Below are positions 777 through 12,200 of a DNA stretch of 64,000 bases, piece after piece. Origin of the DNA: Macrostomum lignano. Lineage: Eukaryota. The notes below the pieces were generated by a model. That model saw only the letters and a list, made by a program, of their open reading frames with translations, did not search any database and had not been told where the DNA came from. The translations under genes and the position numbers were made by a program. The DNA lies in contig NIVC01002216.1 of NCBI GenBank assembly GCA_002269645.1, forward strand, positions 124,001 through 188,000, in the 5' to 3' direction. Every line of letters begins with the position of its first letter. Position 1 is the stretch's first letter.

Positions 777-3700
777 CTAGGGTCCTGGCTGGGTGTCAAA
801 CATCTTTTTGAACTCTTTCTGCTGCTGCTTCTCCAGCCTCTTGGCCTTCTTGAACTCCCTCCTTTGCTGCTTCTTGAGAGTGCGCTTCATGTGCTTGAGG
901 TAGACGATCTCGTCACGGAGGCTCTTTCTGGAATTCAGTTGAAAAGGCACAGACTAAATACTCACAGTAGTAACTGTGGATTATAATGGCAAAAGTAATT
1001 CAGAAAATGAATGCTGATTACTAATCAATTGGCATTACTCTCAACTAAGAGGATTTTGCACATTTTATATCATCAAAGAGTGATGTCTACAGAAATCATT
1101 GTCATGTCTACAGAAATCATTGTCATGTCTACAGAAATAATTGCCATGTCTACAAGAATCATTGTCATGTCTACAGAAATGATTGTCATGTCTACAGAAA
1201 TCATTGTCATGTCTAAGGGAATCATTGTCATGTCTAAGGGAATCATTTTCTTGTCTACAAGAATCATTGTCATGTCGAGAGTAATCATTAACATGTCTAC
1301 AGGAATGAAGGTGATGTCTACAGGAATCAGGGTGGTGTCTACAGAAGTCGGAGACCCAAGGCCAAGCTCACGCATCAATCGTGTCCATCTCAATGCCCGC
1401 CCTAGCCAGCTTCTTTCGCGGCGTCTTGCCAGCCAAGTCCTTCGTTGCCAAGATGGTGTCCCGGACGTTCGGGTCCATTCGCTTCCGTCCTCGAACGACT
1501 GCCTTCAGCCCTGCATGGATTGTTGATGAATGATGAAATACGAAAGTAAAGACCGCTGACCGCTTTACATTCAATGAAGCGTGTGCATGCCCTAACTAAT
1601 TAAACTAACTAACTAACTAACTAACTAACTAACTAACTAACTAACTAACTAACTAACTAACTAACTAACTAACTAACTAACTAACTAACTAACTAACTAA
1701 CTAACTAACTAACTAACTAACTAACTAACTAACTAACTAACTAACTAACTAACTAACTGACTAACTAATTAAACTAACTAACTGACTAACTAACTAACTA
1801 ACTAACTAACTAACTAACTAACTAACTAACTAACTAACTAACTAACTAACTAACTAACTAACTAACTAACTAACTAACTAACTAACTAACTAACTAACTA
1901 ACTAACTAACTAACTAACTAACTAACTAACTAACTAACTAACTAACTAACTAACTAACTAACTAACTAACTAACTAACTAACTAACTGTAGTAAATCAGC
2001 TATACTGCTAGTTTAAAGTGGTTGAAGAGCACGAGAGAGCTATCAAAGCTCTGATGTCTGTATTTATATTGTAAAGCGATGCTACGTGCGCGAGAGTGAT
2101 GACATAATTTAAGCGTACACAATTGCCCATAACTAAAATAGCAATAACTCAAACCTAACGTGCCAAGCTTGCGTAGATAATAATAGAGAAACAAATAATA
2201 GGAAAGTACAAATACAAATCAATACTCGTACTGAGTGCATGCACATACTTGTAGCTACACGACACTTCCTCCCCACAGGGAGTTAAAACTCGAAAAAAAG
2301 CATAGTGATTCAAGATTAGTTTGTGAGCCAAGTCAGTGTCACAAGGTTCAATCACTGCCCGCCTGAAACCTGGCAGGCGCGAGCCGTATGCGTTCTGGAT
2401 ATCGGCGCATTGCTCCGGCGTGCTGTCCGGCGACTTCCGTGATCGGAGCAGGAGCAGGTCCAGCGAGAGCAGCTGTCGGAGCCGCTGCCGAAGTCTCCGA
2501 AGTTGAGCTGTCCGGGCCCACCTCAGACGGCGGTGTCGGTTCGGAGATTGCCGGTGGTACTCGGTCGGGTGCCGCGACAGCCGGTACTACTGGAGGCTGC
2601 TGACGCTGCTCTGGCAGGAGTTGGTCGATGTGGCGCTGGACGATGCCCTCGCCGACCTTGACATCGTAGTTGCGCTTGCCCGCCGCCATGACGAGGCCGG
2701 GCCGCCAGCCGGCATCCTTGCCGAAGGTCTTCACTCGCACGGTGTCACCAACTTCGAAGGACCGGGCTTGGCGGGGCGTCGAGTCGGTGATCGCACTCTG
2801 ACGGTGTCGCATCTGTTCAGTCAGGGACGGTCGCAGGAGGTCCAGCCGGGATCGCAGGCGACGTCCGAATAGCAGTTCGCTTGGTGAGGCACCGGTGCTC
2901 GAATGCGGCGTGATCCGGTAGGCAAACAGGAAGCGCTGCATGGCTTCCGCAGAGTGACCCGACTTCCTGATGTGAGATTTCAGCGTCTGCACGAATCTTT
3001 CGGCCTGTCCGTTGGTGGCCGGGTGGTAGGGCGCTGAAGTCACGTGCCGGATCCCATTGCTACGCATGAAGTCAGCGAACTCACGAGAGGCGAACTGGGG
3101 GCCGTTGTCGGAGACGAGAATCCTTGGCAGGCCCAAGTGGCAGAATACGTCACGGAGATGCCCGATGGTCCCGCCAGCAGACGTGTCGCTGATGAGGCGA
3201 ACTTCGGGCCATTTGCTGTAGGCGTCAACAATGACTATGTACATTCGACCGTTGACTGGGCCGGCGAAGTCGACATGCAGGCGGCTCCATGGTTCGTTGG
3301 GGAACAGCCAGGGATGCACTGGAGCCTTTGCTGGGTCTGCCTGATGAGCTCTGCAGGTGTCGCACTCTCTCCCGAGCTGCTCTAGTTCCTTGTCTAGCCC
3401 AGGCCACCAGACGAAGCTCCGTGCGAGGGCCTTCATTCGGCTCGCACCGGGATGTGCGAGATGCAGCTCCCGCAGCACCGACTTGCGCAGGGTGTCCGGG
3501 ATAACGACGCGAGATCCCATCAGCACACAACCGGCTTCGACTGAAAGCTCTGCTTGACGATGGGCGAAGTCCGGGAAGTCGTTAGCTGGCAGCTCCTGTC
3601 CCGACCGCAGGGCCCACAGCAGCTTTGACAGTGCCGTGTCGGCTTGAGTTGCCTTGGCAATGGCAGCAGCAGTCACTGCGACGCTCGAATCGTCCTCTAG

Positions 3701-9945: not shown

Positions 9946-12200
9946 ATGCCGAAGTCAAGCTCTGTAACATTCGCTCTGACACTTTTGCTAATGACCGCCT
10001 GCGCCCAGGCCTGCAGTCCTAAAGGTGAGTCCTTAGCAAAGAAGCTCATGCACAGTACATGTTTTTTGGTCCTTTTTGGCGGCGGAAACACATCTCCTCG
10101 TAGAGTAAACACATTTCTTCGTAGATTAAACACATTTCCTCGTAGATTAAACACATTTCCTCGTAGATTAAACACATTTCCTCGTAGATTAAACACATTT
10201 CCTCGTAGGTTAGACACATTTTCTCGTAGATTAAACACATTTCCTCGTAGATTAAACACATTTCCTCGTAGATTAAACACATTTCCTCGTAGATTAAACA
10301 CATTTCCTCGTAGATTAGACAAATTTCCTGGTAGATTAAACACATTTTTTATAGCTTAAGCACATTTCCTCGTAGCTTAAGTGCACATTTCCTCGTAGCT
10401 TAAGTGCACATTTCCTCGTAGATTAAGTGCACATTTCCTCGTAGATTAAACGCATTTTCCTCTTGGCTTAAGCACATATCCTCGAAGCTTAGGCACACTT
10501 CTTAATAGATTAAACACATTTCCTCGTAGGTTAAACACATATCTGTGTGCGCTAAACACAGTCACACCCTCATGAGAATTGGTCAACCAGAACTTTTGTA
10601 AAAAAGAGTAGCAAAAATTCAAGAATTCCGCAACGCCAGACCCCATCCACTCCGTCACGCAGCGGTCAAGTCGGTCTTCGTAGGCCGGGCCGCAGCGCAG
10701 GCCCAGCACCAGGCCAAGAAAGCCAAATACCTGGCCGGGGAGACGCAGCCGCTCGGCCAGAAGCTGGGCTTGAGCCGGGGCGGCGTCATCATGGAGAATG
10801 TCGGAGTGTAAGAGCACTTTATATATTAGTGTCTGTCTGTCTGTCTGTCTGTCTGTCTGTCTGTCTGTCTGTCTGTCTGTCTGTCTGTTTCTGTGTCTGT
10901 CTGACTGTTTGTCTGTCTGTCTGTCTGTCTTTCTGTCTGTCTGTCTGTCTGTCTGTCTGTCTGTCTGTCTGTCTGTCTGTCTGTCTGTCTGTCTGTCTGT
11001 CTGTCTGTCTGTCTGTCTGTCTGTCTGTCTGTCTGTCTGTCTGTCTGTCTGTCTGTCTGTCTGTCTGTCTGTCTGTCTGTCTGTCTGTCTGTTGTCTGTC
11101 TGTCTGTCTGTCTGTCTGTCTGTCTGTCTGTCTGTCTGTCTGTCTGTCTGTCTGTCTGTCTGTCTGTCTGTCTGTCTGTCTGTCTGTCTGTCTGTCTGTC
11201 TGTGTGTCTGTCTGTCTGTCTGTCTGTCTGTCTGTCTGTGTGTCTGTCTGTCTGTCTGTCTGTCTGTCTGTGTGTCTGTCTGTCTGTCTGTCTGTCTGTC
11301 TGTCTGTGTGTCTGTCTGTCTGTCTGTCTGTCTGTCTGGCTGTCTGTCTGTCTGTCTGTCTGTCTGTCTGTCTGTCTGTCTGTCTGTCTGTTTGTCTGTC
11401 TGTCTGTCTGTCTGTCTGTCTGTCTGTCTGTCTGTCTGTCTGTCTGTCTGTCTGTCTGTCTGTCTGTCTGTCTGTCTGTCTGTCTGTCTGTCTGTCTGTC
11501 TGTCTGTCTGTCTGTCTGTCTGTCTGTCTGTCTGTCTGTCTGTCTGTCTGTCTGTCTGTCTGTCTGTCTGTCTGTCTGTCTGTCTGACTGTTTGTCTGTC
11601 TGTCTGTCTGACTGTTTGTCTGTCTGTCTGTCTGTCTTTCTGTCTGACTGTTTGTCTGTCTGTCTGTCTGTCTGTCTGTCTGTCTGTCTGTCTGTCTGTC
11701 TGTCTGTCTGTCTGTCTGTCTGTCTGACTGTTTGTCTGTCTGTCTGTCTGTCTTTCTGTCTGTCTGTCTGTCTGTCTGTCTGTCAGCCACAATACCCGGC
11801 CCTCTACAAACCATCGCGCCTCAGAGACCGGCTGCGCAGTGAGATCAAGTACCTGGAGGGCATCGAAAAGCAGATCAAGCAGACCAAGAAGCAGGAGATC
11901 AAACTGGCCCAAGCCGTTGCCAAGGCCGAAGCCAAGGGCAAAGAAATTCCCAAGTGGGCCCAGAAGACCATGAAGGCACAGGAGGCGCGGCGCGCGGAGG
12001 ACCTGGCGGACGCGGCCGACAAGGCGAAGGCGGCCCAGCGAGCGGCCGAGCGGGCGGCCAGGGAGGCGCAGGCCAAGAAGGGCTTCTTCCGCAAGGGCAA
12101 GTTGCCTCCGCCCAACCCTCAGCCTGTGCCGCCGCCGGCTCTCGTTGAGACGCTTCAAAAAACAGAGGAGATGACCAAGAAAAGAAGATTTTTTGGTTGA
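9946..12200 (+). CDS. Gene C: secreted basic protein, about 199 aa, 3 exons (9946-10024, 10663-10807, 11825-12200); paralogue of gene A
   Basis: Signal peptide [23 protein letters not shown]. Junctions AAAG|gtgagt, gcag|CGGTC, GGAGT|gtaaga and tcag|AGACC, phases 1 and 2. Aligns with gene A: [33 protein letters not shown] vs KDLAGKT..KKLARAGIEMDTIDAKSLRDEIVYL. Confidence 0.82.
10090..10540. repeat. 21-bp minisatellite (ACACATTTCCTCGTAGATTAA)n in intron 1 of gene C
   Basis: Tandem units. Confidence 0.93.
10829..11784. repeat. (GTCT)n microsatellite filling intron 2 of gene C
   Basis: Direct; source of the CLSV/DRQT ORFs. Confidence 0.97.

Follow-up and report, generated by a model that had tools for sequence, protein, structure and literature searches.

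Two questions are raised by a repeat-rich locus of Macrostomum lignano, a free-living flatworm: whether three small spliced genes predicted there, here called A, B and C, are real, and whether they form a family of secreted proteins. The locus lies on contig NIVC01002216.1 of the published assembly Mlig_3_7 (GCA_002269645.1), and all coordinates below are those of the window, that is, the whole 64,000-nucleotide stretch of DNA that was analyzed. Positions 1-17157 agree at 100% identity with the reverse strand of this contig. The region is of a eukaryotic type, rich in repeats and holding spliced genes, and protein searches with the products of A, B and C gave matches to M. lignano only. Two further loci in the same assembly, L001 on NIVC01000249.1 and L002 on NIVC01001334.1, are homeologous copies of this one, about 95% identical to it and with the A-B-C gene order kept in both. 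Such copies fit the published description of the M. lignano genome as partly duplicated; in the same description, long terminal repeat (LTR) retrotransposons make up 21% of the genome and simple and tandem repeats 15% (PMC5730564).

The models of the three genes were rebuilt from the sequence. Gene A is on the minus strand and codes for 124 amino acids; B and C are on the plus strand and code for 131 and 199 amino acids. All introns have GT-AG borders, intron 1 being in phase 1 and intron 2 in phase 2 in each gene, and exon 1 always codes for a hydrophobic N-terminus with a Cys. The minus strand of A and the lengths, Cys-bearing first exons and intron phases of all three genes, as proposed in a first-pass annotation of this DNA, were reproduced. 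The exons are as follows.

6989-7073, minus strand: A exon 1, with the ATG, a predicted signal peptide, a Cys-rich start (MRASWILALAAGLACFGCNFHGGDCCMA-G) and a GTGAGT donor in phase 1; it matches PAA59882.1 (P0013) and A0A1I8ILB1.
1372-1510, minus strand: A exon 2, with an RGRKR site and the first half of a conserved core (KDLAGKT...LARAGIEMDTID); it ends in phase 2.
777-927, minus strand: A exon 3, with a predicted basic helix, heptad-like hydrophobic positions and the stop codon.
7340-7430, plus strand: B exon 1, with a predicted signal peptide (MRATAFNCFVLLPLLLLLSRVGSA, directly followed by C) and a phase-1 donor; it is identical to A0A1I8ILM7.
7979-8153, plus strand: B exon 2, rich in Ala, Thr, Ser and Pro; an alternative start at 7982 gives a 130-amino-acid form.
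8606-8735, plus strand: B exon 3, with the stop codon and an internal GT (8709/8710) that is used by the chimeric B-C model P0003.
9946-10024, plus strand: C exon 1, with a predicted signal peptide, then a Cys, and a phase-1 donor.
10663-10807, plus strand: C exon 2, coding for the conserved core's first half (KYLAGET...); it ends in phase 2.
11825-12200, plus strand: C exon 3, which codes for the conserved helix and then for a helix rich in Ala/Lys/Glu/Arg, a Pro-rich linker and a terminal helix that ends in KKRRFFG; the stop codon follows.

Each gene has counterparts among public models. A corresponds to BOX15_Mlig017295 (g1-g3) and UniProt A0A1I8ILB1, B to BOX15_Mlig010376g1 and A0A1I8ILM7, and C to BOX15_Mlig025669 (g1 and g5) and A0A1I8JDZ9. 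The protein PAA59882.1 (BOX15_Mlig017295g2, P0013), which is annotated on NIVC01002216.1, reproduces A with the residues A11, F20 and D53 of this copy and splices over the 5.5-kb retrotransposon-bearing intron of A. The UniProt entry for B is identical to the rebuilt product, and C is matched at 98% identity by PAA87081.1, PAA69291.1 and A0A1I8JDZ9. The splice junctions of A, B and C thus agree with independent public protein models. The first-pass annotation had called for RNA confirmation of these junctions, and this is available indirectly, because the NCBI models that reproduce them go back to an RNA-seq transcriptome that was assembled under genome guidance with StringTie, TACO and TBONE (PMC5730564). 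A, B and C are real genes. Their description as hidden holds in part: all three were missed by the open reading frame track, and on NIVC01002216.1 NCBI annotates A and a downstream EF-hand gene and has no model for B or C, but all three are present in NCBI and UniProt as uncharacterized proteins.

The second exon of B can be joined in two ways. Positions 7976-7981, at the end of intron 1, form a CAGCAG (NAGNAG) tandem acceptor, and both products are in the databases: the 131-amino-acid form in UniProt and a 130-amino-acid form, spliced at the second AG, in NCBI (PAA69290.1). A 142-amino-acid model of B, with an in-frame acceptor upstream at 7946, was dropped; the database models splice at 7979 or 7982.

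That A and C are paralogues follows from their alignment scores, from their shared intron positions and from the coincidence of their hydrophobic residues. The mature parts of the two proteins align with a Smith-Waterman score of 90, compared with a mean of 36 (standard deviation 6) for shuffled sequences, and none of 5000 shuffles reached this score; in a pairwise search space the BLASTP match has 34 bits and E = 1e-7. When single exons were compared, the exon 2 score was reached by 57 of 5000 shuffles and the exon 3 score by 3 of 5000. The introns fall in aligned codons, the phase-1 intron at G29 of A and A27 of C and the phase-2 intron at residue 75 of both, and hydrophobic residues coincide at positions 78, 82, 85, 88, 92, 100, 103 and 106 of the long helix. 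The alignment across the second junction that had been quoted in the first-pass annotation is exact, and the similarity goes beyond chance. A conserved core of about 45 residues straddles the phase-2 intron, with the pattern K-x-L-A-G-x-T ... L-x-R-x-G-x-x-M ... L-R-x-E-I-x-Y-L. Conservation is strongest in this core, ahead of the helix and where it begins, and not in the cationic tail.

No wider family was recognized, in agreement with what had been noted earlier. Pfam searches at E values up to 10 gave no match for A, B or C, and the best match of the A/C profile among PDB sequences (E = 0.03) was unrelated. A Foldseek comparison of the C model with the PDB likewise gave no match (best E = 5.7); this fold comparison is uninformative, since the AlphaFold2 models are single long helices. 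An hmmsearch of 1.84e9 representative proteins with a hidden Markov model of A and C returned entries from M. lignano only, some of them chimeric models, so that the lineage-specific character proposed for the family is borne out within that collection. Judged by sequence, A and C are a two-gene orphan family, confined to M. lignano among everything searched. No further paralogues were found in the window, where tblastn recovered only A, B and C themselves, and no transcript contigs for A or C were found beyond the NCBI genome.

The position of B is different. At the level of sequence comparison B is no detectable relative of A or C: its Smith-Waterman scores with both lie at the shuffle mean, and hhalign gives a probability of 0.4%. 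The earlier suggestion of B as a third, rapidly diverged member alongside A and C is not supported by these comparisons, and we regard it as quite improbable. It would account for the physical linkage of B, which sits between A and C, for its three exons with introns in phases 1 and 2, for the Cys that directly follows the predicted cleavage site and for the start MRA[ST] common to A and B. Genes for secreted proteins, however, commonly have a phase-1 intron behind the signal-peptide exon, and agreement of both intron phases by chance has a probability of about 1 in 9. The composition of B also differs from that of A and C: it is rich in Ala, Thr, Ser and Pro and by composition probably disordered, no long helix being expected from its sequence, and the isoelectric point (pI) of the mature protein is 9.25.

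The homeologous copies were used to ask whether the three genes are under constraint. The open reading frames of A, B and C are intact in all three loci. A comparison of the three pooled genes in the window with those of L001 showed 14 synonymous and 10 non-synonymous differences, which gives a ratio of non-synonymous to synonymous change (pN/pS) of 0.23 (binomial p = 4e-4 against neutrality). A ratio of this size indicates that the genes are under constraint (purifying selection). Exons are about 98.4% identical between copies, compared with about 95% for introns and intergenic or flanking DNA. Five of the nine codons with an amino-acid difference sit in signal-peptide exons; one such change, F9R in the signal-peptide exon of C, leaves the hydrophobic core intact.

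All three N-termini have a positively charged start and a hydrophobic core of 10 to 14 residues, for which manual checking gave 9-residue Kyte-Doolittle means of 2.5 to 3.2. Putative cleavage sites with small residues at -3 and -1 lie directly before a Cys (GLA-C, GSA-C and AQA-C), and the positive residue, the core and the -3/-1 motif are kept in every homeologous copy of A, B and C. The cores appear too short for a membrane anchor and look like those typical of cleavable signal peptides, as had been proposed for the first exons; the automatic UniProt names of B and of one C variant, 'Secreted protein' and 'Signal peptide protein', agree. A Cys after each signal peptide also recalls bacterial lipoproteins, a reading that is ruled out for spliced eukaryotic genes in a flatworm genome.

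If the N-termini of A and C were not signal peptides, the two products could be intracellular basic proteins, nuclear, nucleolar or ribosome-associated. Their Lys/Arg clusters resemble nuclear localization signals, and automatic UniProt names at this locus include 'Ribosomal_L19e domain-containing' and '60S ribosomal protein L6'. Neither an L19e nor an L6 domain, nor the domain of TolA, a third label in use, was found in A, B or C with Pfam even at E values up to 10, and these names are therefore composition artefacts. The entry named '60S ribosomal protein L6' (P0003) is moreover a chimera, in which the donor at 8709/8710 in B exon 3 is joined to an acceptor at 9903/9904 in the 5' untranslated region (UTR) of C. 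The signal-peptide-like N-terminus of all three genes is retained in every homeologous copy, and F9R and the other non-synonymous changes spare its hydrophobic core. An intracellular role is in our view highly improbable.

The join of B to C in P0003 may reflect read-through or a polycistronic precursor, both of which are common in M. lignano (PMC5730564). Four UniProt models that go by such labels (A0A1I8FAP3, A0A1I8FAB5, P0005 and P0006) are chimeras, which join the antisense strand of A exon 2 (1340-1447, plus strand), exons of B, and the 5' UTR and exons of C. As far as annotation is concerned, B and C are worth adding to NIVC01002216.1, and several UniProt names and the chimeric models are artefacts that need correction.

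The mature forms of A and C are strongly basic. Each has a pI of 10.2, and the ratio of K+R to D+E is 29/13 in A and 39/19 in C. Long helices were predicted by AlphaFold2 at residues 75-119 of A and at 71-112 and 118-160 of C, with a predicted local distance difference test score (pLDDT) of about 90; elsewhere confidence was low and no compact fold was predicted. The model thus concurs with the long basic helices that had been suggested for both proteins. When the helices are arranged in heptads, d positions L78, L85, L/I92 and L/V106 and a positions I82 and A103 are conserved, and K, Q or E stands at several other a and d positions. C has in addition the Ala/Lys/Glu/Arg helix, the Pro-rich linker and the terminal helix. 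The predicted helices have a narrow, conserved hydrophobic stripe with a spacing of 3-4 and a very low mean hydrophobicity, and this is more in keeping with coiled coils or stable single helices than with membrane-lytic peptides.

This bears on whether A and C are defense or antimicrobial effectors. In that case the cationic amphipathic helix at the C-terminus would attach to membranes of microbes or to lipopolysaccharide (LPS), and the two proteins would be functional analogues of trematode helminth defense molecules (HDM/Sm16) or cathelicidin-type peptides. HDMs, too, have a signal-peptide exon and a mature protein that is small, cationic and for the most part helical (PMC7373315). For residues 85-120 of A the hydrophobic moment is 0.54-0.62 and the net charge +5 to +8 per 18 residues, and the furin-type RGRKR site of A could free the helical part. 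Mean hydrophobicity of the helices is, however, far below that of membrane-active peptides; the peak of conservation in the core and helix start, rather than in the cationic tail, is not what such a role would favor; RGRKR is missing from C, where VGRAA stands at the equivalent position; the profile search of 1.84e9 proteins found no similar trematode protein (several M. lignano models of UniRef origin were returned); and A and C have 3 exons where HDMs have 4 (PMC7373315). We consider a defense role unlikely.

The same basic sites could be read as processing sites of a prohormone. The dibasic KR site that the first-pass annotation had pointed out in A is present, and A in fact carries RGRKR, MKR and AKR. 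The conserved Gly-Arg would then mark the end of an N-terminal peptide, possibly an amidated one, and C ends in KKRR-FFG. The Gly and Arg are invariant in the alignment (VVR-G-RKR in A, VFV-G-R in C), several di- and tribasic sites are present, and both proteins are small precursors with a predicted signal peptide. Yet what the paralogues share is a long helical core without flanking cleavage sites in both, and their putative N-terminal peptides have little in common beyond one Cys and V-x-G-R. The site in C is monobasic, and neither protein contains repeated copies of a peptide. A prohormone function is very unlikely.

The reading that we consider probable is that A and C are secreted, cationic, extended helical proteins, presumably coiled-coil, that bind polyanions, with B an unrelated protein at the promoter of A. 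The two genes would have arisen as paralogues by local duplication, and each product would begin with a signal peptide that is cleaved off, followed by a conserved Cys close to the N-terminus of the mature protein, the core of about 45 residues and the long cationic alpha-helix. After entry into the secretory pathway and removal of the signal peptide, the mature proteins would form extended helical rods, probably coiled-coil oligomers, which the N-terminal Cys could link by disulfides. Through their basic surface they would bind polyanions, either extracellularly or within secretory granules; glycans or mucus, nucleic acid and the surfaces of microbes or sperm are examples of such partners. 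B would be an unrelated, disordered, Ala/Thr/Ser/Pro-rich secreted protein that uses the promoter region of A. We infer secretion and oligomerization of A and C from their sequences; the binding partner and the tissue are a guess.

Several points weigh against this reading, the dependence of secretion on inference from sequence being the first. The pN/pS of 0.23 is based on 24 substitutions only. AlphaFold2 was run essentially without an alignment, and long charged helices often score a high pLDDT regardless. On the Eisenberg scale the A and C helices have a very low mean hydrophobicity, -0.3 to -0.9, and with a narrow hydrophobic stripe that has K, Q or E at several a positions each may be a single stable helix and not a coiled coil. 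Lastly, the databases may lack other Macrostomum species, so that restriction to M. lignano is an upper bound.

A and C could also be reproductive or gland secretions, either in prostate-gland seminal fluid or as the basic matrix of rhabdites, mucus or shell glands. Rhabdites stain acidophilic, which implies a basic protein content; this is a lead only. The restriction of A and C to one lineage would fit the rapid evolution of reproductive genes reported for the genus (PMC7336406). A pN/pS of 0.23, measured between recent homeologues only, is on the other hand unlike that of rapidly evolving reproductive proteins. Searchable paper texts hold no expression or functional data under Mlig017295, Mlig010376, Mlig025669 or the UniProt accessions, and the three gene identifiers are absent from the searched supplements of PMC7336406, PMC5816591, PMC5946080, PMC5730564 and PMC12896417. 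A gland or reproductive role is rather unlikely.

A and B start on opposite strands, with 267 bp from one start codon to the other, and in L002 the annotated models of A and B start 97 bp apart, also on opposite strands. A compact bidirectional promoter region common to the two genes is therefore indicated. C lies in tandem with B, about 1.2 kb downstream. Two further elements of the locus are given here.

7074-7339, no strand assigned: divergent A/B promoter region, made up of the 266 bp that separate the start codons of A and B; it holds both 5' UTRs (5' extensions of P0013 and P0019).
1987-6581, minus strand: Ty3/gypsy-type LTR retrotransposon within a (CTAA)n array of A intron 1; it is not part of the gene product.

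The retrotransposon has LTRs of 280 nucleotides that are 99% identical, a pol open reading frame with reverse transcriptase, RNase H and integrase domains, and a gag-like open reading frame, with a break between the two near 5155-5275. Its absence from both L001 and L002 indicates a recent insertion. The length of the target-site duplication is ambiguous owing to the microsatellite; CTAACT is compatible.

The coding exons of A, B and C are small islands among tandem arrays. In four of the six introns, and in the spacer between B and C, a micro- or minisatellite predominates, a different one in each; intron 1 of B, and intron 1 of C before 10086, are not dominated by arrays. The intron arrays lie at 1083-1346, 1592-1987 with 6581-6977, 8167-8541, 10086-10540 and 10830-11784, and those of the B-C spacer at 9087-9223 and 9295-9635. 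Among the units in the A-C region are a 21-bp unit in 12.6 copies, (CTAA) in about 200 copies, a 22-bp unit in 17 copies, another 21-bp unit in 21 copies and (TGTC) in 239 copies. Downstream of the 3' end of A, a 17-bp unit (TGCCGCTACTTGAGCAG) is repeated 9.9 times at 310-472, with a copy number that varies between homeologues. On the other side of the cluster, a plus-strand gene at about 13480-17570 codes for a protein of 256 amino acids in NCBI with one EF-hand (Pfam E = 3.5e-6). An intron of this gene holds an array of 63.6 copies of a 49-bp unit (14074-17180), compared with about 3.4 copies in L001 and about 8.4 in L002, and the array is thus greatly expanded in this copy. Rfam and tRNA scans found no RNA genes in the window.

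A and C are an ordinary case of orphan genes, and represent neither a new mechanism nor a new kind of system. If secreted as predicted, they extend the taxonomically restricted secreted proteins of a flatworm model with transgenesis and RNA interference, and their function is therefore directly testable. The compact divergent promoter of A and B, at less than 270 bp, could serve in reporter constructs. In a more far-reaching version, which we regard as rather doubtful, a Macrostomum-restricted family would have been founded by A and C, as secreted, cationic coiled-coil proteins joined by disulfides and with a defined extracellular role, such as HDM-like defense or LPS binding or a rhabdite or mucus matrix. 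A and C would then be co-regulated with a mucin-like B by the bidirectional promoter.

Among known systems, the database entries of the proteins themselves offer only the labels hypothetical protein, 'Secreted protein', 'Protein TolA' and 'Ribosomal_L19e domain-containing', and none of them records the relationship between A and C. The resemblance to TolA is one of composition: C lacks the TolA domain and is the product of a eukaryotic gene with introns and a predicted signal peptide. Residues 118-160 of C, predicted to form an Ala/Lys/Glu/Arg-rich helix, liken it to secreted coiled-coil or single-alpha-helix proteins rich in Ala, Lys and Glu. Flatworm neuropeptide and prohormone precursors, too, are small and carry a signal peptide, a Gly-basic motif and cleavage sites at basic residues, but A and C conserve a long helical core and not short peptides between cleavage sites. 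The nearest analogue in concept is the HDM/Sm16 group (FhHDM-1), which combines a signal-peptide exon with a small cationic helical mature protein. HDMs are likewise restricted to a flatworm lineage, small and secreted, with exon 1 coding for the signal peptide and a mature cationic amphipathic alpha-helix, and were reported, in a set of 69 helminth genomes, from trematodes only (PMC7373315); for A and C secretion is predicted. The differences are that A and C show no sequence similarity to HDMs detectable in the profile search, that HDM genes have 4 exons and 3 introns (PMC7373315) compared with 3 exons and 2 introns, that the helices of A and C are much more polar, and that M. lignano, being free-living, has no host for them to modulate. 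A and C are not members of the HDM family, but they could work in an HDM-like manner.

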